Below are positions 124 to 12,516 of a stretch of 32,000 nt of DNA, piece by piece. The translations under genes and the position numbers were made by a program. Position 1 is the first letter of the stretch. Each line of letters opens with the position of its first letter. The stretch lies in assembly GCA_054661495.1 (NCBI GenBank), contig BAAFSQ010000020.1:30001-62000 (forward strand), in the 5' to 3' direction. Source of the DNA: Zygophlyctis sp. KS116. Its lineage: Eukaryota; Fungi; Chytridiomycota. The notes beneath the pieces were generated by a model, which saw nothing but the letters and a program-made list of their open reading frames with translations, was not told the DNA's origin and ran no database searches.

Positions 124-2809
124 TTAAAGTTTCCTGCGATTATGAGATTTCTTGCCTTGGGATACAAATTTAAGAGGCTGTATTGGTACCCCCAATTTCT
201 TTTCAATTCTGGGAGCGATCTTTTCTAAATAAATATTTTGAGCGTTCCACTCCTTTCCAATAGGCATACGAATCGTTCTTTCGTACTGGTCACGATTTTG
301 AAATCCATGAGGAACATGAGGAACTAGATATTGGATGGATTTTTTCAATCTCTTTTCATTTATAACAACATGCTTCAAATTGGCATCTTTACGCTTTTCT
401 GCTTCGATTCCAGGGATTTCTTTTACCACCTTCTTCTGCTTCTGCGGCTTCAAACCGATTCCTCCCCATGATCCCTATAGATTAAAAATTATATTTTATA
501 TACCCATCCGGGTAAAGTTAAATCTTCTTCCTTGGGCATATCTCTCTCAATGATTTTCTTCTTTTCAATTTCAAATTCCTACATAATTGAATATAATAAT
601 ATAATACCTCGACAACATTGTCATTTTCGAATGTCATACGCATAATGTCAGAGCGAGAGAGTTTTTTAATATCAGTAGAATGAATCACATCCAATTCCTC
701 ATCATGATTCGATTCATCATCTCCTGAGAGTGCAGAGGATTCATTCTCATCCTGGTCTTTTTGAGAGTCTTCTTCATCAGCAATACCATCATGATCACTC
801 AGATTCTCCTGAACTGAGGCCACTTCTAAATTTTGGCCATCTTCTAAAGCCGTATCTATGTGAATCATACTTTTTTCCTTTTCAGATTCAAACTTTTTCT
901 TATGCTTTTCTAATTTGAGAGCAGATCGAGCACTGTCATCTTTATGGATATGTTTCCTGCTTTTTTGAAGTGGCTCAGATATATCAACCTGAAGCCATGG
1001 ATTTGAAATCGTTTCATTGCTAATAGCCACCTCTACGGATTTAGGCTGTTCATCAACAGATTGTTCTTCTACCAAATTTTCATCGTTTTCGTCAGATGAA
1101 GTATTATCGGCACTGATTTTTTCTGTGGTGTCTGTGGGTTTATTAACATTTCCAAAATAAGCTGTTTGATACTGCTCTTTAATTTCAAACGGCTGTACTT
1201 CAAAAAGAGGCTTGAGTTGCTTTACAGCCCCAACTGTGATTGGCCCAGAAGTTTGTAAGCCAACTATATTAACTTGATCCTTAAAATCCTCAGAGTCAGT
1301 TGATAAATATCCATCACTAACAACTGGAGATTCCATATGATTGATGGTAGGATTTTCAGGGTTAGCATCTTCTGATATTTCTCCTTCATCTTCATGTCCC
1401 ATCTCTCTAACATTTCTAATCATTTCTTTTGTTTCTGTCCTTTGACGCTCGAGAGCTTTTTGCATAAATTTCATGCCCATCAGTCCCTTCAAAGGCGGGG
1501 TCACATTATCAATGTCTTTCTCCAAGTTGTCCAATTTAATCATTTGATTATCAATAGTGTCCTGCTCATCATTAATATCTGAGTCATCTGATTCGTTCCC
1601 AGTAATCCTCTTCTTCAACTCTTGATGTTTTTCTAGTTGTTTCATCAAGGCGACTCTAGTTTCGGGATCATTATCCTTTCTGGCCAAGATTTGCTTTGCC
1701 CATTTACTAGTATTCTTATGCTTTAGGGAGACTCTTTCTTTTGCTCTGTCTAGCTCCAACTTTTCTAATTTTTCTTTAGCAAGTTGAGGATCAATTCTTT
1801 TTAGCTCTTCCAAATCCAAATCAAGTGCATCCACAGTCTTTTTACGATGCAATTTTCTATAAACCTTGCTCTTTATTTTTGCCACTTTTTTTTGCTTCTG
1901 TTCTTTATAAAAACAGAGCGCTCTCATTTTAGACAACTCTTTTTGTCTTTCTAGCAATTGTTCCTTTGATAAATTAAGCAATTTCAACTCTTCATTTTCT
2001 GCAACATCATTCTCACCCATTCCTGATTCCTTGATCAAACTCGAAATTTCCTTCTCTAAATCCGTCACTGGATTAAATTGGCCAACCAATGCAGAGCTAT
2101 AATTAATCAACAAATATCCAACTTACCTAGTCATATTAATCCCCTTCTCTTCATCAAAATGCAAATGATCAGCTTCTCTATTTTTCTTTATAATTGGTGT
2201 CCATTTAGAGATTTTTTTACTTGCCTCATCATATGCTGCAATTCTCTCCATTCTATATTTAGCGATAATGCATTACCTATTCTTTATCCTTGTAGCAGCG
2301 GGTGCATCCACTCTATTAGAGTTTTCCAGTCCCTTGAGTTTCTTCTTCAAAGCACCAAAAGATGTTTCTTCCTGCACACTCTCCATTAAATCACTTATCG
2401 AGACTTTCCCAGTTGATGGAATAGTGAATTCCCCTTGTTTAGCATTCAGATCAACAGTTTTCCTCTTTTTAGAAACCATGTATGATAAATCTTTGACTGA
2501 TCCATCCGAATCCGAATCTGAAAATTCATTCAGCGGATCATCCAATTGTTCCAAAGGATCAATCAGATCTTGAAGATTTTCTCTTTTGATGAGATCGCTC
2601 AAATCCCCTTCTTGTCCGAAATCATCATCGTCCAATGATTCATTTTCCGAGCCATTTTCTGTATGGAAATAAGATCCAAACTTTTCTTCATCGCTTTCAT
2701 TGAAAACCATGTCCTCATCAATTTCCTCATCATCCTTTGGATCTACTTGTTCGGACTCTGATGCATCATCCTCCTGCTCTTCCCGATAGATATTGTAAAT
2801 ATTCTTCAT
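124..2809 (-). CDS. UTP14: U3 snoRNP/SSU processome protein Utp14 (857 aa, 5 exons)
   Basis: Introns 2253-2276, 2097-2126, 579-607, 475-503 (GT..AG, 24-30 nt). Splicing restores MERIAAYDE..KW, KVAKIKSKVYRK, RAKERVSLKHKNTSKWAK, LPGW|GSWGG and YERTIRMPIGKEWN, all Utp14 hallmarks. Confidence 0.95.
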
Positions 2810-2998: not shown

Positions 2999-5900
2999 CT
3001 ACTCTTGAACTACTTCTTCAGGAGCTTTTTGTACAGTGGGCCGTATCCAATGAGATTTTGAGTTTCTAAGAGTTCCAATTTCTTTAATAAGGCCTCTATT
3101 CTCCATAATTGAGTTTATGTTGACAGATTTAAATCGGGAAATTGAAGAATCTGTCTGAATGCGTAAAGAAGCAATCTTTTCTCTTAAAAATTCTTGCTGA
3201 TCTAGACATTCTTTTTTAATAGATTGATTCATTTTTGAATTTTGAAGTTCAGACTCTCTTGATCCATATTTCTTTGCGAGATTTTCAATAGACTTTTTAA
3301 GTAGATGAGGTTCTTGAAAGTAGTGGATGCAATCTTGAAGATCAGCACGGAAAGATTTGATCTGTGAGTTATATTTCATGAGTTTTTCATGTTCCTTGAC
3401 GTAGTCCTTCTTTTTGACTTGTAAGACATTACATAGTTTGGCAATATTTTCTTCTAATGATATCTTTTGTCGAGATAAGCTATCTAATTCAGTATTAATA
3501 TCTTGAATTTCAGATGTCATTTCGGCAATTTCATTCTCTCTTGGCTCTACTTGTTCCTTTAATTCCTTGATCCTGAAATCAAGAACAAACTTGTACTTTT
3601 CGAGCTCTTGATTTCTTTTCTTGAGATCATAAACTTTTCTTTCTTTTTCTTGAATGTGTTCGTCTCTTTCAGTCATCTATTATAATAAAAGTTTTGATTA
3701 TTACCTCTTTTCGTAGATTTACAATGTCTTTTTCAAATCCTAGAATAATGTTTTGTAGTTTTTTCTGATTATCAGCCATCCTGGCCATTTCAGACTTGTT
3801 TTCCTCAATATCCTTATTCAAAGTATTGAATTTTTTTCTCATGATTCCATTCTCTCCTTTTAGTCTAGCTGCCTCTTCTCTTTCCGATTTGACCTTTTTT
3901 TCATATCGATTGGTTAATGCTACAACTTCAGTGTCGATGTCTTCTTCATTTTGTTTTGTCATTTCTTCAAGCTCTTTAACCTGTTCTTTCAGCTCATCTT
4001 TTGTCTGATTTTTAGTCTAAATTTCATTTACCTTGTTTATTGCAGAGATTTTAGAATTCAAATGATTCTCAGCAACTGTTTGTGTTTCTGTAAGAGTTAC
4101 ATGTGTCTCTCTTTCGAATTCAACCATTTCATCTTGCCGACCTTTTTGTAATATATTGGATTTTTCTTGTTCTCGTTCATATTTCTCATACTCTTCCATG
4201 AGTTGTGAATTGTTTTTTGTTTCTACATCCTATGTTTAATATTAAATCAAATATTACATGAATTTCTTGAACATGTTTTGATTTTAAATTGGAAAGTTCT
4301 TCTTGATGTTTAACACTTTCCTTATCTTTTTCTGTTCTTAGCACAGATGCAGAGATTTTAAGAGCCTCAATCTCTTGGGTATACTTTTCAGTAATATCCT
4401 TTAATTTCTCATTGAAATTCATATCCTTTAATCGTAGCTGATATTCATGTTCCAGTTTTAATTCTTCGAGTCCTCTTTGCAGTTCTCCCATTATTACTGT
4501 TTTTTCTTCAAGATCAGATTTGGTAATTAAAACCTTGCGATTAATTATATACTATTACCTCATCAGAGTAAATAGGAGCTTTAGTGCTTTTGATTGAATG
4601 CTCATCTTTGTCTGAAATTCTGAAAATGTATACACACCCATCTTCAGCTGCTGAGAAAAGGTATTGATCATCCGCTGAAATTCGTAACTTTGTAACTGGA
4701 CCAGAATGAGCTTCATGTTCTTGAAAGTCACTAACATCTGACAATGGAAATTTAAAGGCCTTTATAGAACCAGTTGAAGTTCCTATTAATTAAAAATCTT
4801 GGGAAAAAATACCTGCAAACATCATTCTTCCAGAATTTGAAAGGATAACTTGTGTTAGAATTGAGCTGCTATGCAGTTCCCGAGTGACAGAAGACTCTGT
4901 GATTTCTTTCAAAAGATGATCTATCCCAACAGCATAGACTGTTTTAGCGTCAGAAGTACATATTGCAGATGAATAACTGCATACTTTCAATATATGCTCT
5001 GTTTCACGCTTGAATTCTCTTGTATTCCAAGTATATACGGCACCATCAGTTCCTGCAGAGACTAGAACACTATCGTCCGGGGTGAAATATAAACTTCGAA
5101 CTTTTCCATTATGACCTTTAAGCACTCCAATCATCTCAAAGGTCCATACAGAATATATTTGAATCATATTTCCATGTGTAGCAGCAAAAAAATGACCGCC
5201 ATTAGAGAAACGACACTAATCATCAGAAATTAAACAATACTTCTTGACATGATCGCAATGGAAATTCTCTAAAGGTTCGTAAATCATCTAATAAGATATT
5301 CATCAATCGTAGCTTATCGCTGAATCCTGCTAAAATATACAGCCCTGAAGGATGGAGTGAAACTGATAAAATATCCTCTGGGAAAGTTTTGACCTGTTCA
5401 CAAGTTGCTGTTATATAATTCCATATCCGAATTGATTTATCTGTACTGCATGTGACAAGAAAGGGCTTCCTGGAACATACATCCATACCTTTAACCGGAC
5501 CATAATGAAAACCATGAGCGATTGTATCATATTGTAGTTCATTTTCCTAATATTTTAACTTTTTTAATTACCTTTTTAGCCAAATCGGTATCTTCCAAAG
5601 AAATTTTAAATATTTGATTTTGATCAGAGGATATTATAATATCACGATATGAAGGACTGATAGACATTGTCTTTATATGTAATTCTTGATCTGGAAATTG
5701 AATTTTTCTTTTAATTTCATAACCATCCGCTCTCACATCTTGAAAAACTCGAGAATATAATACAATAGTTCCATGAGCCCCAGCAGCAGCAAACCCATTA
5801 TCAAAATTAGCAAGACAATCTACCGCCAAATTAGTAGCAAAATTCAATTCTTGTATCAGATTACCATCTAAAACAATGTAAATTTTCCCATCAGAACTTC

Positions 5901-6610
5901 CAAGAGCAATTGCATTATTTTGAAGCCAAATATGATTATAAAAATCCTTGTTCGGACAAGATGTCCGAATTGATCTTAGTAGCCCTTCAGAATATCTAAA
6001 TATTTTAAATATTTTATCCCCAATAACACAAATTTCCGTGGCATCAAATGGATTAATTGAAATTTGTGTTATATTTCCATTAAATCCTACTGGAGCAGAT
6101 GGAATAGATGCAATTGCTTTCCCCTTCTCCCAAGCATAATAATGTAATTGAAACTCTGGGCCATTCATTTGAGCTGCTAAATATTTTCCATCTAAAGAAA
6201 AAGACAATGCAGTAAATTCCTAAATTAAGTCTAGATCATATTACCTTATTTTCACCAGGATCTGCAAATATTGTTTTTCTCTTTCTAAAGGTGTTTAATT
6301 CATAGACTGTAATCGTTGGTTTGACTGATGATGCTTCTGCGAGTGCCATCATTGTCCGATCAGCAGTTACTGCCACTGACGAAATCCCTTCTCCATGCTC
6401 TGGAACCTGTATAAACTTTTGAGTATTATTTTCAATATTATAAACTATGAGTTTAATCTGTAGACACGTACCGACAATATTAGATCCTGCTGGATACAAA
6501 ATCGTATTTTCATCCAAAAAGAATAAGTTATCCTTGATGCGATTGATGCCAAAAACATGACTAGCATTAATAAGTAAGATTTACGTATGAGATACTGAAG
6601 CGATTGACAT
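2999..6610 (-). CDS. CFAP57: Cilia- and flagella-associated protein 57 / WDR65 (WD40 + coiled coil; 1115 aa, 11 exons)
   Basis: Introns 6561-6584, 6445-6471, 6220-6244, 5547-5571, 5216-5240, 4783-4812, 4534-4558, 4230-4257, 4005-4031, 3677-3704. Motifs HVFGI..YPAGSN, MDVCSRKPFLVTCSTDKSIRIWNY, CRFSNGGHFFAA, EVLITKSDLEEK, LKGENGIMRKKF, LKKRNQELEKYKFVLDFRIKELK. Confidence 0.93.
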
Positions 6611-6859
6611 TATTTCCGATAACTCGAAACAATAGGAATTACTCAAGTTTATGCAATGGAAAAATCTCAAAATTTAAAATCATCATGGCATAAAGAATGC
6701 GGTGTTTTTTATTATAGACTAAAATCATTAGCATAGGCATAGATTGAAAGTCTTTGGACATGGGCAAACTCGCGTCGTAAAATTTCCGCAGAGCGTCAAG
6801 CACGCTATTTCCCCACTAGATCTTGGTATCAACCTTTACGCTCATAATGATAGATAGAA

Positions 6860-9034
6860 ATGGCACATTGTTTAACAGAGTTGTCTGTCTCAGATGGCTC
6901 AACCCCAATAAATGATAAAATAGAAGATATTCCCTGTTATGGGAAGCTAAAGGATTTGGAAATCATGGTTCCGCCGCAATGGTGGAAAACTGTCTTTGCA
7001 GACTCTACATATCTCAAAACAGATGGGGATTGTGTAGAGGATCCTCAAATTACAAAGGAAGAAATATCACTGCTCCTATCAAATACAGAATTAAAGTCAT
7101 TGATTGAAAATGGTATGTATTTTAACTATTGTCCGCTTTAATAATATGCGGACAACAAATAAAAATGTTTCTAATATAAAGGAAAACCAAAAATTTTAGA
7201 TCTTTGTTGTGGTCAAGGAAGACATTCACTATATTTGGCAAATTTATATCCGCATTTACAAGTTTATGGTCATGATCAGTCGTCTTTTCTTATTTCATTA
7301 GCTAAAGAACGCGCAAATTATCAAAAGAGTCAAACCAATTTTACAGTAGGAGATTGTCGGGAAATTCCTTATGATGATCAAATGTTTGATATTGTCTTGC
7401 TTTTGGGAAATTCTTTTGGTTATTTTTCCGATAATGATTCTGACAAAAAAGTTTTGGATCAAGTTTTGAGAGTTTTAAAGCCAGGAGGGATTGTGGTTTT
7501 AGATATAACAGATGGAGAATATATGCGGAGTAATTATGTTCAGCGTGCTTGGGAATGGGTAGATGATTCTACATTTGTTTGTAGAGAAAGGCAACTTTCA
7601 AAGGATAATCTACGGTTAATATCCAGGGAAATTGTTACTGTTGCTAATAGAGGAGTTGTGAGAGATCAATTTTATCAGGAACGACTTTATGGACGAGCAG
7701 AGCTGGAAAATCTTGCAGTCTCGGCGGGTTTAGACCTGATTGCTCAACCACAAACAAACAATGTTGAATCGGTCATTACTGTTGCCAAGGAATTAAGTAA
7801 ATTAAAGGATGATTTAGGAATGATGGAGCAGAGAATTTTGTTTTTTGCCAAAAAACCTCTTTCTTCGCCAAGTAGTGAAAGTGAAACTTCATCTAGTACC
7901 TTGGTGACAAAAAATTTGGAAAATGTATCAATTTCAGCTGAACTACCTTCTATTTCTGATATGGTGATACTTTTAGGAGATGCCACTCAGCCATGTGTTG
8001 GAAAATTGAATGATACTTGGAACAGTGAAGATTTAGCTACTAGACAAATCTTACTAGCAGCCATCAGTTCTTTAGGATTTTCCAGTGATGCTGTAACTGT
8101 ATTAGACAATCACGAATCATTTCATCGAATTTTAGCAGCTAAAAAGCCAAGTTTTGTTTTTAATTTATGCGATGAAGGATTCAATAATGATGCTTTAAAG
8201 GAGTTACATGTCCCTGCTATCCTGGATATGCTTAATATTCCTTATTCTGGAGCTGGGCCCAATTGTCTTGCCTATTGTTATGATAAAGGACTAGTTAATC
8301 GGACAGCCGAAGCTCTCGGTGTTCCGACTCCAAAAGAGATTTTATTTTTAGGAGATTCTGGTACACCAGCTATTTCAAGTGTTGAAAAGTTGGATGCAGT
8401 TGTAAAATCTGATATCAAATATCCAGCATTCATCAAGCCAGTTAAAGGAGATAATTCCTTGGGAATCACTCCACAGTCCATTGTAAATAACAAGGAAGAT
8501 CTCTCGAAATATTTATCTCATTTAAAAGAAATTGGTATAGTTGATGTACTAGTTCAAGAATATCTCCAAGGAACAGAATATGGAGTGGGAGTAATTGGTA
8601 ATATTGGTCAAGGCTTCCATTTCTTTCCTATTTTAGAGGTTGATTATTCAAATATTATTGCTTCTCATCTACCCCCTATTCTTGGATTTGATTCAAAATG
8701 GAATCCCTCATCTCCTTACTGGACAGATATTGTTTATAAGAAAGCAGAAATTCCAAAACAAGTTGAATCACGATTGCATGCAGCATGTATAAGTCTTTGG
8801 GAAAGATTTGGATGCCGTGATTATGCCAGATTTGATTTTCGTGCAGACAATGGCTCTGGCTATGATCAGCCAAACAGCAGTATTAAATTACTAGAAGTGA
8901 ATCCTAATCCTGGATGGTGCTGGGATGGAAAGTTGGCACATATGGGAAGATTTGAAGGGAAAGAGTATCATGAAATATTGGGAATGATTTTAGAAGCCTC
9001 ATGGGGGAGAATATGCCGGGAAAATCAAAATTAG
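6860..9034 (+). CDS. Class I SAM-dependent methyltransferase fused to a D-Ala-D-Ala-ligase-like ATP-grasp domain (701 aa, 2 exons)
   Basis: Intron 7113-7181 (GTATGT..CTAATATAAAG) joins exon 1 to ILDLCCGQGRH (SAM motif I); also GNSFGYF and VLKPGG. C-terminal ATP-grasp motifs: CYDK, FIKPVKGDNSLGI, VLVQEYL.G.E, RDYARFDFR, LLEVNPNPG. Confidence 0.9.
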
Positions 9035-9059
9035 AGAAGGCGTAGGTTGAAAAATCGCC

Positions 9060-9891: not shown

Positions 9892-10929
9892 ATGACTTTG
9901 CCGTATATTCTGAGAGAATCAACGCCTGAAGAGTATTTAAAGGTGATATCAATAAATTATGGATCATGGGGGCATCCTCTTTCCTTGGAAGATTATATTG
10001 ATCGTGAGTTTACACTAGCAAAAGTATCAAGGGAAGTTCGCAGATCTTGGGTTTTGATGAGCGGCGATGAGATTCTTTCAAGTTGTGAAACTTATCAAAC
10101 TCCATTGATTGCAAAGATTGATGGTCAGATCGTTGATGGATCTAGTTTTGGTGTAGCATCAGTGTATGAATTATTGTTTTGATTTGGTAGTTTTACACCA
10201 GTGAAACACAGAGGAAATAGTTATGCTACGTCAATGATGAAGATGTTGTATGGCGAATTGTTCAGTGACAAACAAGATTTAATCGGTATCATTACAAAAA
10301 TTTAAAAACTCTTAGGATCGCATCTGTATTCAGATGTTGGACCCAATTTTTATTCTAAAATTGGATGGGATTTGTATCCTTCATTATCTGCTGAAATAGA
10401 TGTTGATAATTACAAGTCAATCAAGCCCAGAGGTATAATAAACACAATATCCATTCCAGACCTGGAGATACTCTTGAAAACGGATGTAGAAAGATTGGTG
10501 GAGAATATGCAAGACAATACATTTTTGCTCAAACCAACGACACAATCAATTGGTTGGTTGTATGCTCGGTCTGTTTTTGTTGCAGAAAAAATGGGTAAAC
10601 CATCAGTTACATCAGTAGGTGTTGGATATGATGATTCCTTTTTACTCTGGTATTTATCATTCAAAGAGAATTCCATGTATGTAATCAGATTACACGATCC
10701 TTTCAAGTCTAAAATTCCCAATTTGATTGAAGCTGCAGTTGCAGAGGCAAAGTTTTACGGTCTTTCAAAAATTGTGATTTGGAATCCAGATATAGAATAT
10801 TGGAGCAAAGTAGACTCTGTGAAAATTGTTGAAAGAGAAGACTCACTATCTTCCATGGCTCTGCAATATAAAGGTATGAAATTAGAGAAATTTGGTTGGA
10901 TGCAAAATGAAAAATATTCTTGGGTGTGA
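9892..10929 (+). CDS. GNAT acetyltransferase, fungal LYC1-like (326 aa)
   Basis: Introns 10164-10190, 10286-10315. WG..LS.EDY..RE, LSSCET, VASVFTPVKHRGNSYA (acetyl-CoA motif A), SHLYSDVGPNFYSKIGW and C-terminal W..NEKYSW. Confidence 0.85.
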
Positions 10930-10933
10930 TTTT

Positions 10934-12516
10934 TCAGTCTGAGTTTTTTTCTTGTCTGTTTGAAATGTCATTTAGTGATGGCCAAGATGTCTTTTCTGAT
11001 CTATCATGTTTACTACGGACACGACCTATACTAGATTTAATAGAATTCACTATATTTTTGCGATATGATCCTAGAGAAGGGGTCAGATGTACAGAATCTA
11101 GATTCATTTCAACTGAATCCTTTTTCCTATCAACAAGGCTAGTATTTTTTCTTGGCTCGCGAAGTAGTGATAACTCATCTATTCCCTTTTCCGTGTAGAA
11201 TTTTTGAGTTAAAATACAGTGCGATACAAAAATTCCAACACTCTCTTCACTCATTGAATTTAGAGACTGAAGAGCAAAAGGTGCATTTGGTTGAATAGGT
11301 GGCTTTCTTGGTTTTGGATATAAGTTCCCAGTTAAAAGAGACACGAAATATTTATAAGTATAGAATGGTTCAGATTGGAAATACTTTATCTGATCCATTA
11401 TTTCAATTGTAACCTTTTTAGGAGTATTTGATTTTCTTTCCATCTCTGAGATATATGTCAAATCATGAATATATATTCCAAAATATGGAATCATTGGCTT
11501 TGAAATATTGAGTTTCATCCATTGACGATACTGAGAATAATTATCTTGTTCCGAACAGAATTCTAACAAAGCATTCAAGTCCTTGATTTTCTTTTTTGAT
11601 ACCAATGACCAAGTAATTTTTAATCTGTAAAGAGGGGGGGATTGAAGTGCACTAGTGATTGCCTTTAACGACTGAAAGTTACGAAGCTGATATAATCGTT
11701 TACTTGTTTTAATCCAATATTCCAAAACCTCGGCTCTTGCATTAGGTGTCTTTGGATTTAACGCTGCATGTTCAACAACTCTACATAGATAATTGAAAAA
11801 TTGTGTTGATGGTTCAATTGATGATTTGGATTGATTCTTATTAAAAAAGTCTGATGGTAAAATTCCACGAAATAGTTCCTGATCAATAAGACATAACTGA
11901 AAGGCCAGATAAAAAGGTCTTATATGATGAATTTCTGTTAAAGAGGCTGCTATATGTATAAAATCCATAATCTTTTGTAGCAATTCGATCTTTGATGAAA
12001 ATCCTCCAAATAAATCCTTTTCGGGATTAAAATCTGGATCTTTTTGAATCAATTTAGTATACATTTTAAGAAGAGTTGATTGCGGCGCTATCGGTATATA
12101 TACATCTTTTTCATGCCCTGATTGATCATGATTCACAAAATCATTTGTCATACTTTCCGGAGAATCATACATTCTTTTCATATTCAGCAAGTCTTCTGGT
12201 GAAGATTCTTCTAATTCTTTTGTTGAGCGATTACTCAAATATGCCGGTTTCGGTGGAACTAGAGGAGGAATCCGCCGATTATTAATCGATTGTAGCTTTG
12301 CAGCACATTTTTTTACAGTTTCTATTAATTCATCGTGTGATTTCTTATCTAGACTATAATCATTAGAATTATCAATCAAGATTGTTGAGATATCATTTAA
12401 AATCAATGCATAGATTGCATACGCATCCTGATCTTTTTAGATTCTGTAAGACTTACCTTGTGCTGAGAACTTTGCTCAAATGCATTAGCTTTTTCTAGAT
12501 AATCTTGAAAATGCAT
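10934..12516 (-). CDS. Cdc25-type RasGEF domain protein (517 aa)
   Basis: Intron 12428-12456. LAFQLCLIDQELFRGI, RAEVLEYWIK, LRNFQSLKAITSALQSPPLYRLKITW, NYSQYR, PMIPYFGIYIHDLTYI. Confidence 0.88.

Follow-up and report, generated by a model that had tools for sequence, protein, structure and literature searches.

The window analyzed here, 32,000 nucleotides of one contig from the chytrid Zygophlyctis sp. KS116, carries on its forward strand a gene of two exons (Table 1) whose product combines a methyltransferase domain, a linker and an ATP-grasp domain, in that order, in a single polypeptide. Exon 1 encodes the cap at the N-terminal end of the methyltransferase domain, with the motif WW..F...YLKTDGD, and removal of the intron restores the context of SAM-binding motif I (...KILDLCCGQG). 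One contig from a freshwater metatranscriptome (run X14) joins 7111/7112 to 7181/7182 and skips exactly 69 nt, and RNA contigs lie on the stretches that encode methyltransferase, linker and ATP-grasp domain alike. The gene model and these contigs confirm a preliminary description of this DNA, in which 6860-9034 was read as one spliced ORF of 701 residues with both domains in it. Searches and structure predictions were run on exons 1 and 2 separately rather than on the joined protein; exon 1 matched the N-termini of orthologues from Batrachochytrium (67% identity, 2e-27) and from a bacterium (49% identity, 3e-16). The same contig bears eukaryotic neighbors (genes for a Der1-like protein, an LYC1-type GNAT, a RasGEF and an EML-like propeller), GC content is even over the whole window, and the gene occurs once in the 12.7-Mb assembly. 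In the chytrid, this is a native nuclear gene, present in one copy, transcribed and interrupted by an intron.

Table 1. Features of the fusion gene, in window coordinates.
Feature	Position	Strand	Details
Whole gene	6860-9034	+	two exons, 702 codons, 701 aa
Exon 1	6860..7112	+	84 codons + 1 base; ATG at 6860; ends in phase 1
Intron	7113..7181	+	spliceosomal, 69 nt, GT..AG (GTATGT...AAG), phase 1
Exon 2	7182..9034	+	in-frame 7184-9031, 616 aa; TAG stop 9032-9034
Methyltransferase Rossmann core and post-beta5 cap	7184..7858	+	exon-2 aa 1-225; Pfam Methyltransf_25/31/11
SAM-binding motif I (ILDLCCGQG)	7193..7219	+	columns invariant or nearly so in 75 homologues
Ser-rich disordered linker	7868..7921	+	exon-2 aa 229-246; sole segment with pLDDT < 50 (AlphaFold)
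Ddl-fold ATP-grasp ligase domain	7958..9031	+	exon-2 aa 259-616; three subdomains, all present
Omega-loop equivalent (GFDSKWNPSSPYW)	8684..8722	+	HMMER alignment to E. coli DdlB 1IOV
ARFDFR	8825..8842	+	R549 = Arg255, D551 = Asp257 (Mg/transition state)
EVNPNPGWCWDG	8894..8929	+	E571 = Glu270, N573 = Asn272, G577 = Gly276

Within exon 2, Pfam places Methyltransf_25 at residues 4-102 (2e-20), and AlphaFold models the methyltransferase region, which also holds GNSFGYF, FVCRER.LS and DQFY.ERLY, with pLDDT above 85. The cap is rich in charged residues that are invariant among 75 homologues. The best solved relative of this domain is NmbA of Chlorobaculum tepidum (PDB 9RI2), retrieved at 3e-18 with a single sequence and at 3e-38 with a family profile, which spans residues 13-239 of its 266 and so takes in the N-terminal cap, with exon 1 aligned to the NmbA N-terminus; the profile's next match (3e-23) extends over the core only. 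NmbA (PMC12719100) and the window protein are both class I SAM methyltransferases, and they are homologous in motifs I-VI, in the N-terminal cap (EWFEEWF..LYLK in NmbA, WW..F...YLK here) and in the post-beta5 cap (ER.LS); class I fold, SAM motifs and both NmbA-like caps are all present at the level of sequence. Superposition of the predicted domain of the Batrachochytrium orthologue on 9RI2, whose crystal structure shows a narrow-basket cap, gave a mediocre match in the cap (TM by target 0.57, rmsd 9.5). The NmbA authors remark that AlphaFold gets this very cap wrong (PMC12719100). Unlike the fusion, NmbA is a stand-alone protein of 266 residues from bacillithiol-producing bacteria; TDGD, LCCGQGRH and DQFY.ERLY distinguish the fusion family from it, and the identity between the two (about 25% by Foldseek with the same domain model) lies below the 35% or more by which the NmbA cluster was delimited (PMC12719100).

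Further structural matches to the Batrachochytrium-orthologue model were CcbJ, CypM, 3D2L, TylM1, DesVI, CalS10, KedS8 and GNMT, mostly amine N-methyltransferases with some C-methyltransferases, and the top NCBIfam model for a bacterial member of the family is the daptide amine methyltransferase. These nearest structural and HMM neighbors (CcbJ/LmbJ, CypM, the daptide enzyme and the TylM1/DesVI type) methylate amines of small molecules or of peptide termini; they are stand-alone tailoring enzymes of secondary-metabolite or RiPP clusters, a context that the fusion does not share. We assign the N-terminal domain to the SAM-dependent methyltransferases of the NmbA/CcbJ/CypM/aminosugar type. Because C-methyltransferases occur among the structural neighbors, N-methylation is likely rather than proven.

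The linker varies in length and sequence among homologues. Beyond it, Pfam recognizes Dala_Dala_lig_C at exon-2 residues 401-603 (7e-16), and Foldseek comparison with Ddl structures gave a TM by target of 0.85-0.87 across some 350 columns; among the 50 best matches, 47 were chains of Ddl or D-Ala-D-Lac ligases. The domain thus shares with DdlB/DdlA and VanA-type enzymes the three-subdomain ATP-grasp fold, the residues for ATP, Mg and the transition state, and an omega-loop with its catalytic Lys: equivalents of DdlB K144 (here K418), S151, K215 (K505), R255, D257, E270, N272 and G276 are all present and nearly invariant among the 75 homologues, as are W506, P508, S510, P511, Y512 and W513 of the omega-loop. 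The substrate sites differ from those of Ddl. The GGxSxE motif is not present, the N-terminal subdomain opening instead with LLGD; the D-Ala1 site is not kept, Asn424 standing at the position of Ser150 and Trp506 at that of Tyr216; at the D-Ala2 carboxylate site the nearly invariant D581, with G582 and the next residue, K583, takes the place of His280, Ser281 and Leu282; and R553 is a family-invariant Arg where Ddl has Met259. Every NCBIfam Ddl cut-off (243-246 bits) is missed by far, the scores being 79-90 bits (NF002378, 89.7 against 243; TIGR01205, 79.3 against 245.65). The C-terminal domain is a Ddl-fold ATP-grasp ligase with intact catalytic residues and with pockets unlike those for D-alanine. 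Pfam, AlphaFold and Foldseek agree with the earlier outline of a class I methyltransferase, a Ser-rich linker and a Ddl-like ATP-grasp domain, and all the motifs then quoted recur in the translations; the view that this is not a true D-Ala-D-Ala ligase, then based on the missing GGxSxE motif, gains from the low scores and the lost D-Ala sites.

An alignment of 75 rows revealed family signature columns that are invariant or nearly so (LDLCCGQGRH, GNSFGYF, CRER.LS, DQFY.ERLY, NLCDEG, SKW.P.SPYW, RDYARFDFR and NPNPGW..DG), all of them present in the window protein. Relatives were found in at least 556 prokaryotic species genomes, bacterial and archaeal, and the order of methyltransferase before ATP-grasp is constant across hundreds of species, which substantiates the statement, in the preliminary description, that bacteria and archaea have an uncharacterized fusion family of this kind. 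The prokaryotic fusions (in Hyphomicrobium, Filomicrobium, Catalinimonas and Methanoculleus, for example) are orthologous, with the same order and signature motifs, and are annotated [quoted passage not shown]; the window protein is 42-46% identical to bacterial homologues over its full length. Eukaryotic members differ in that their genes have introns and their proteins reach further at the N-terminus and have longer linkers of low complexity. Among zoosporic fungi, members occur in some 45 named genera, Rozella and an aphelid included, and essentially all sampled lineages of these fungi carry the fusion, as do four choanoflagellates. The closest relatives of the window protein are from chytrids (57-65% identity), and it is 54% identical to BATDEDRAFT_34316 of Batrachochytrium. 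The homologue search revealed no fusion among named non-flagellated fungi. Both Pfam families occur together in an Ascomycota cluster of the ESM Atlas (score 0.90). This cluster, which the Atlas shape search did not recover, may mean that the family is not entirely missing from Dikarya; another candidate for an ascomycete form (P0135) was rejected when the homologue search identified it as a Parachlamydiales-type bacterial orthologue. Literature searches on the fusion, the Batrachochytrium locus tag and choanoflagellate Ddl yielded no characterization and nothing beyond Sun et al. 2016. The window protein is the chytrid orthologue of a widespread bifunctional family for which we found no characterization in the literature.

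Gene neighborhoods were surveyed by all-against-all clustering of ORFs from 80 GTDB loci. No neighbor was common across phyla in this set, in keeping with the fusion being a self-contained enzyme. Recurrent neighbors were each confined to one alphaproteobacterial lineage: RsmB adjoins the fusion in 18 loci, RluD and a sigma factor in eight, ornithine decarboxylase in five and Leu/Phe-tRNA transferase in five, with IMPDH/GMP synthase also recurring. RsmD and InfA are further ribosome or RNA-modification neighbors in alphaproteobacteria; such genes could hint at a translational target or reflect housekeeping synteny only. In one Sumerlaeota genome, a gene for SAH hydrolase lies directly upstream of the fusion, with SAM synthetase nearby, a context in line with a flux of methyl groups. 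Rhodospirillaceae-like genomes have a membrane ORF of 53-65 residues and a secreted ORF of 90 residues upstream of the fusion; we rejected these as RiPP precursors, as they are missing elsewhere and one is a transmembrane helix. An AstE/AspA deacylase gene adjoins the fusion in five planctomycete or gammaproteobacterial loci, and the Zygophlyctis genome has one AstE/AspA gene; its product is 32% identical to the planctomycete neighbor, too weak a resemblance to uphold a synthase/hydrolase pair.

The domain composition suggests that amide formation by the ligase is coupled to methylation of a nitrogen on a small metabolite that bears an amine, a reading to which we give a probability of about one half. 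By analogy, the ATP-grasp domain would activate a carboxylate as acyl phosphate and join it to an amine, and the methyltransferase would methylate a free amine of the ligase substrate or product, yielding in two steps, from common cellular precursors, a small N-methylated aminoacyl-amide or dipeptide-like metabolite. Enzymes of the NmbA/CcbJ/CypM/aminosugar type act on amines, primary or secondary, and typically on the free alpha-amine of an amino acid that is bound through an amide to another moiety. NmbA itself is reported to methylate bacillithiol at its Cys nitrogen, an alpha-amine of this kind (PMC12719100). A split version of the family, in which a methyltransferase gene (300 aa) overlaps the start of a Ddl-like gene (348 aa), is a translationally coupled pair and backs joint ligation and methylation, as does the domain order fixed in hundreds of species. 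With this pair and the affinity to NmbA and other amine N-methyltransferases, coupled ligation and methylation of an amine or amino acid, as first proposed, is still the best reading. The roles first suggested for the product or activity, as an osmolyte or a defense metabolite or in protein tailing, are conjectural. We infer that the two activities are coupled on one substrate, that this substrate would be a small molecule and that the methyl group would go to nitrogen; the product is probably a methylated amide. Analogies with mycosporine MysB/MysD, carnosine/anserine synthesis, RimK and GshF were also weighed, and none was adopted as a statement of membership; MysB, carnosine synthase and RimK represent other methyltransferase or ATP-grasp subfamilies.

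The target might alternatively be a protein or peptide, which we consider possible though distinctly doubtful. The ATP-grasp domain would then attach an amino acid to some conserved protein, in the way of RimK or TTL, or form an isopeptide at lysine, and the methyltransferase would methylate the N-terminal or lysine amine of that protein in the manner of PrmA, CypM or NTMT. In Penicillium and a liverwort, this type of methyltransferase is joined to a SET domain, and on one contig (L099) the methyltransferase/ATP-grasp pair carries one as well; SET domains of two different types have entered such fusions independently, and a SET gene lies near the Methanoculleus copy. SET domains are not known to be anything but protein-lysine methyltransferases, and their presence favors a substrate that carries lysine and may be a protein. 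Two close relatives, CypM and the daptide methyltransferase, work on peptides; genes for ribosome biogenesis neighbor the fusion in several alphaproteobacterial lineages, with RsmB in 18 loci, RluD-like in eight, and RsmD and InfA in others; and identity of about 45% between bacterial and eukaryotic members would suit a universal macromolecular target. However, the ligase is Ddl-like in all three subdomains and retains a conserved omega-loop lid, an architecture typical of enclosed small-molecule sites and not of RimK or TTL enzymes, and the invariant charged residues of the methyltransferase cap likewise resemble those of small-molecule enzymes. Moreover, no precursor peptide or target gene is kept beside the fusion across phyla in the 80 loci, and the ribosome-related neighbors are lineage-specific synteny blocks.

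In a special case of the small-metabolite reading, which we regard as improbable, the product would be a low-molecular-weight thiol comparable to N-methyl-bacillithiol, with cysteine joined to an amine by the ligase and methylated at its own nitrogen by the NmbA-like domain. GshF-type glutathione synthetases carry a Ddl-like ATP-grasp domain, a precedent for such a ligase, and NmbA is by far the closest characterized relative of the methyltransferase domain. Known thiol cofactors arise by ATP-dependent ligation of Cys followed by a block on the Cys amine (PMC12719100). Cysteine is nevertheless at most a candidate substrate; identity to NmbA is about 25% (Foldseek), under the 35% of the cluster definition (PMC12719100), and NmbA is without the TDGD motif. 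Proline-amide, aminosugar and peptide amines are the methyl acceptors of structural relatives that are just as close, the organisms concerned are expected to use glutathione, and the BshA/B/C bacillithiol pathway is reported for no eukaryote (PMC12719100).

That the protein is a genuine D-alanine--D-alanine (or D-Ala-D-X) ligase fused by chance to an unrelated methyltransferase, as database names such as "D-alanine-D-alanine ligase" and the best fold and sequence matches (Ddl and VanA) would have it, is extremely unlikely given the scores far below the NCBIfam cut-offs, the loss of both D-Ala sites and the occurrence of the protein in fungi and choanoflagellates, which are not known to make peptidoglycan.

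Phylogenetic trees (quick LG+G4 searches, unrooted, with SH-aLRT support) united all eukaryotic copies in one clade (97 and 96) that broadly matches the species tree. The choanoflagellate copies (100 and 99) form the sister group of those from Holomycota (90 and 94), with Rozella basal among the latter. The window protein belongs to an environmental clade (SH-aLRT 99) of Chytridiomycetes, next to either Rhizophydiales or Rhizophlyctis depending on sampling. Distribution and tree fit a single ancient bacterial-type acquisition or ancestry followed by vertical descent and loss: the gene would have entered, or already been present in, the opisthokont stem, passed vertically through choanoflagellates and zoosporic Holomycota, and been lost in animals. 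The preliminary description had proposed horizontal acquisition, in favor of which patchy fungal hits would speak. A bacterial origin is likely, as an ancient event at or before the opisthokont stem; the fusion is not patchy but present in essentially all sampled zoosporic fungal lineages and in choanoflagellates, in one clade resembling the species tree, and because of that distribution recent transfer into a fungus is not supported. The broad vertical spread that the same description named in advance as evidence against its proposal is largely what we found, in zoosporic fungi and choanoflagellates.

An earlier survey bears on this history. Sun et al. 2016 listed, as HGT family no. 20, a "D-alanine-D-alanine ligase" of Batrachochytrium dendrobatidis with SAM-methyltransferase GO terms and 39% identity (8e-167) to bacteria, on a criterion of homologues in five or fewer fungi (PMC5005798). 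This family is very probably the same orthologue group as the window gene, so that the Batrachochytrium orthologue was probably already recorded as a bacterial transfer in 2016; current sampling, in contrast, finds the gene throughout zoosporic fungi and in choanoflagellates. That listing, the prokaryote-like architecture and the 42-46% identity to bacterial homologues could be taken to indicate recent lineage-specific transfer into a fungus, or bacterial contamination of the assembly, a scenario made most implausible by the RNA-confirmed intron, the eukaryotic genes flanking the locus on the same contig, and the position of the protein, with chytrids as nearest relatives (57-65% identity), within a fungal and choanoflagellate clade.

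A bolder extension of our preferred reading, a coupled ligase and N-methyltransferase acting on a small metabolite, is that the family makes an undiscovered N-methylated aminoacyl-amide, which might be an N-methyl-cysteinyl low-molecular-weight thiol or might contain methylated lysine. Zoosporic fungi (with the amphibian pathogen Batrachochytrium among them), choanoflagellates and aquatic bacteria and archaea by the hundreds would have this compound in common, and its loss would date from the time when fungi and animals gave up life as flagellate single cells; we regard this full account as unlikely.

These results correct the naming of the protein in databases, as it is not a D-Ala-D-Ala ligase, and move the 2016 reading of horizontal transfer into B. 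dendrobatidis to an ancient event. Identity of about 45% over more than 600 residues between bacterial or archaeal and opisthokont members indicates a strongly constrained reaction, and the link to NmbA offers a concrete, testable hypothesis for it, N-methylation of the free amine of an amide-linked amino acid. No human counterpart of the Batrachochytrium orthologue occurs among the named matches, and the product and its essentiality may consequently interest those working on chytridiomycosis. Named eukaryotic matches are confined to lineages with swimming unicellular stages, and the gene thereby marks something that was lost as animals and terrestrial fungi arose.

The window encodes an enzyme with two functional domains, the chytrid representative of an uncharacterized family that is ancient and under strong constraint. 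In the reading we favor, with a probability of about 0.5, its Ddl-fold domain would most likely form an amide bond and its NmbA-like domain would most likely N-methylate the same small molecule at a free amine. The two exons were translated, searched and folded separately rather than as a joined protein. The splice is in phase, joining exon 1 to ...KPKILDLCCGQG, which is SAM-binding motif I, and the spliced total is exactly the 701 aa given in the preliminary description, whose listed motifs were all found in the translations. The 69-nt intron is real, beyond prediction: a freshwater metatranscriptome (run X14) contains a 251-nt contig in which 7111/7112 is joined to 7181/7182 and the 69 nt between them, bounded by GT..AG, are missing. 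Two metatranscriptomes have RNA contigs on 6858-7327 (methyltransferase part), 7797-7936 (linker) and 8025-8565 (ligase part); none of them bridges both domains, and the frame between the domains is unbroken. One contig starts 2 nt 5' of the start codon, at 6858, which hints that the 5' leader may be very short, although contigs do not define transcript ends. DNA of the window recurs in more than 10 freshwater metagenome studies, marking the organism as a freshwater microbe. Exon 1 shares 67% identity with the Batrachochytrium orthologue and 49% with one from a bacterium; in exon 2, Pfam recognizes Methyltransf_25/31/11 at aa 3-109 and Dala_Dala_lig_C at aa 401-603. The gene is native to this genome, given eukaryotic-type neighbors on the same contig (among them an EML-like beta-propeller gene), a GC content uniform across the window, and a single copy in the 12.7-Mb assembly. 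A Der1-like gene on the same strand has its ATG just 25 nt (9035-9059) beyond the stop codon of the fusion gene, and gene spacing at this locus is very compact for a fungus.

Coordinates of the fusion gene, its neighbors and features at related loci (positions are those of the window or of the locus named)
Feature	Position	Strand	Remark
Start codon ATG	6860	+	opens frame
Exon 1 as translated	6860-7111	+	
Intron donor GTATGT	7113	+	reached by frame from 6860
Intron acceptor AAG	ends 7181	+	sequence reading
Exon 2 frame	7182 to TAG 9032-9034	+	sequence reading
Exon 2 as translated	7184-9031	+	
Der1-like gene	9060 onward	+	neighbor survey
LYC1-type GNAT	10372-10926		follows Der1-like gene
RasGEF	10934-12406	opposite to fusion gene	
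L099, methyltransferase ORF	4387-5004		nanopore metagenome contig (region 4387-7156)
L099, Ddl-like ATP-grasp with C-terminal minimal SET domain	5001-6773		abuts methyltransferase ORF
L001, ORFs preceding fusion gene	7209-7959		Rhodospirillaceae-like
L005, ORFs preceding fusion gene	7265-7965		Rhodospirillaceae-like
L008, ORFs preceding fusion gene	7205-7964		Rhodospirillaceae-like
L024, AstE/AspA-family deacylase	7695-8702		adjoins fusion gene
L029, L030, L066, L073, AstE/AspA-family deacylase			adjoins fusion gene
L098 (contig 158 of the window's assembly, G000), AstE/AspA gene	1137-2520	-	intron-split

The best solved relative of the methyltransferase domain in a single-sequence search was PDB 9RI2 (3e-18; next match, 4e-12); a family-profile search retrieved it at 3e-38 (residues 13-239 of 266), a span that takes in both the N-terminal WW..F...YLK segment and the cap after beta5, the next match (3e-23) comprising the Rossmann core only. 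The structure is that of Chlorobaculum tepidum NmbA; a 2025 study demonstrated that this enzyme methylates bacillithiol on the nitrogen of its cysteinyl amine, and presented it as a new class of N-directed natural-product methyltransferases (PMC12719100). For a bacterial member of the family, the best NCBIfam model was the daptide amine methyltransferase, with a score below that model's cut-off. The N-terminal cap and methyltransferase domain were modelled on the Batrachochytrium orthologue (pLDDT 89.7), and shape matches of this model comprise CcbJ, CypM, TylM1, DesVI, CalS10, KedS8, NmbA and GNMT, together with a few C-methyltransferases. CcbJ N-methylates the amino-acid moiety of celesticetin, CypM is a peptide N-terminal dimethylase, and TylM1, DesVI, CalS10 and KedS8 are aminosugar N-methylases. 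What these relatives have in common is amine methylation, often of the free alpha-amine of an amide-linked amino acid.

NmbA-like methyltransferases 42-48% identical to that of the window also occur fused to a SMYD-like SET domain, with no ATP-grasp, in the proteins P0196 (Penicillium atrosanguineum, 622 aa), P0238 (the liverwort Calypogeia fissa, 647 aa) and P0250. On the metagenome contig L099, an additional SET fragment follows the ATP-grasp/SET ORF, so that the locus would be a methyltransferase/ATP-grasp/SET triple or else one gene with a frameshift; this contig may be eukaryotic, since it also encodes a pepsin-like protease. A SET gene lies 2.6 kb from the Methanoculleus copy of the fusion. 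Because SET domains are, to our knowledge, known only as protein-lysine methyltransferases, these associations, whether with the methyltransferase alone or with the methyltransferase/ATP-grasp pair, suggest that the substrate may contain lysine; a protein or peptide as target is a possible, if rather unlikely, reading. In the carnitine pathway of Neurospora, no gene has yet been assigned to the N-methyltransferase that acts on free lysine (PMC8085414). The methyltransferase-SET family is a speculative candidate for it. Of the favored mechanism, amide formation and N-methylation on one small molecule, a thiol-specific version appears improbable.

The AlphaFold model of exon 2 has a mean pLDDT of 90.1, its sole disordered stretch being the Ser-rich linker (aa 229-246), and Foldseek matched aa 259-616 to all three subdomains of D-Ala-D-Ala ligases (TM by target, 0.85-0.87), with Ddl or D-Ala-D-Lac ligases making up 47 of the 50 top matches. 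In a profile-to-sequence alignment with E. coli DdlB (1IOV), the catalytic and ATP/Mg residues K144, S151, K215, R255, D257, E270, N272 and G276 are retained as K418, S425, K505, R549, D551, E571, N573 and G577 (exon-2 numbering), and are nearly invariant across 75 homologues. The determinants of D-alanine specificity are changed: the GGxSxE motif (Glu15) is absent, Ser150 is replaced by Asn424, Tyr216 by Trp506, His280/Ser281/Leu282 by Asp581/Gly582/Lys583, and Met259 by an invariant Arg553. With catalytic residues kept, the ligase is predicted from alignment and model to work in the manner of Ddl, by ATP-dependent acyl-phosphate chemistry under an omega-loop lid, yet not as a D-Ala-D-Ala ligase; those substitutions, and NCBIfam Ddl scores of 79-90 bits against cut-offs of 243-246, make a true Ddl extremely improbable.

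The domain order, methyltransferase then ATP-grasp, is fixed in hundreds of species. At one metagenomic locus a 300-aa methyltransferase gene of the fusion type overlaps the start of a 348-aa Ddl-like gene by 4 nt, a classical Rosetta-stone pair. In a Sumerlaeota genome an SAH hydrolase lies directly upstream of the fusion gene and a SAM synthetase nearby, as would suit a genuine flux of methyl groups. When the neighbors in 80 loci were clustered systematically, none proved to be conserved across phyla, so the enzyme probably works alone on ubiquitous substrates. Two ORFs lie ahead of the fusion gene in Rhodospirillaceae-like genomes, one for a conserved secreted protein of 90 aa that has a CEKCK motif, the other a single-pass membrane ORF of 53-65 aa ending ...GLLFR; both are confined to that lineage. 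Five planctomycete or gammaproteobacterial genomes have an AstE/AspA-family deacylase beside the fusion gene; the window's own genome has one AstE/AspA gene, located elsewhere and only 32% identical to the planctomycete one. According to Sun et al. (2016), the bacterial-type genes of Batrachochytrium also include one for a 'succinylglutamate desuccinylase' (PMC5005798).

Searched with exon 2, a set of 5.8 billion proteins yielded the same two-domain architecture from essentially every sampled zoosporic fungal lineage, including about 30 genera of Chytridiomycota, Gonapodya, Olpidium, Caulochytrium and six Blastocladiomycota, and from the aphelid Amoeboaphelidium, Rozella and Monosiga; a second search seeded with Monosiga added Salpingoeca rosetta and two EukProt entries that group with choanoflagellates. 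The best named match is Rhizophlyctis rosea (59% identity). Among the named matches of both searches there was no fusion from animals, Dikarya or Mucoromycota, an Ascomycota cluster in the ESM Atlas with both Pfam families (feature score 0.90) being a candidate exception. Prokaryotic relatives, all 41-46% identical to the window protein among the matches listed, occur in at least 556 GTDB species genomes of those scanned, archaea included, in agreement with the preliminary description of a bacterial and archaeal family. Carriers include many Alphaproteobacteria (Hyphomicrobiaceae, Rhodospirillaceae, Stellaceae), Planctomycetota, Sumerlaeota, Hydrogenedentota, Nitrospirota, Nitrospinae, Omnitrophota, Chloroflexota, Myxococcota, Bacteroidota and Parachlamydiales, and, among archaea, Methanoculleus, Bathyarchaeia, Nitrososphaeria and Jordarchaeales; an exhaustive representative search gave 229 clusters at E < 1e-30. 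Other methyltransferase/ATP-grasp fusions in the ESM Atlas (ranks 15, 17 and 19) were noted, with the Ascomycota cluster (547 aa, Methyltransf_25 and Dala_Dala_lig_C), an actinobacterial cluster (CPSase-type ATP-grasp and methyltransferase) and a Thermodesulfobacteriota cluster of 375 members (PrmA/RsmD-type methyltransferase and Ddl-like domain); such pairings seem to have arisen repeatedly.

Two maximum-likelihood trees (LG+G4; 79 and 57 rows; support as SH-aLRT only) have an identical backbone. Eukaryotes form a single clade (97 and 96), in which monophyletic choanoflagellates (100 and 99) are the sister group of Holomycota (90 and 94). Within Holomycota, Rozella is basal; it is followed by the aphelid, Olpidium, Caulochytrium and blastoclads (99), branching without resolution, and by the chytrids with Gonapodya. 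The window protein groups with environmental sequences (99) inside Chytridiomycetes, and its neighbors are Rhizophydiales in one tree (86), Rhizophlyctis in the other (97). In a midpoint-rooted drawing, whose root is not inferred, prokaryotic sequences surround the clade of eukaryotes. Read most simply, the pattern reflects a single ancient event, no later than the opisthokont stem, in which a gene of bacterial type was acquired or was ancestral, followed by vertical descent with loss in animals and, judging from named matches, in non-flagellated fungi. This broad, single-clade eukaryotic distribution tells against a patchy transfer into fungi, by the test that the preliminary description itself had set, and recent transfer or contamination is scarcely credible. 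A bacterial origin was probably proposed already by Sun et al. (2016), whose 19 bacterial transfers into B. dendrobatidis, filtered for 'homologues in five or fewer fungi', include a protein named 'D-alanine-D-alanine ligase' that carries GO terms for SAM-methyltransferase (39% identity to bacteria, 8e-167; PMC5005798).

The sequence family is already present in databases, and the idea of transfer in one paper; the window gene itself is an ordinary orthologue. The fusion family is a solid conserved unknown, with a testable chemical hypothesis and an informative phyletic pattern.
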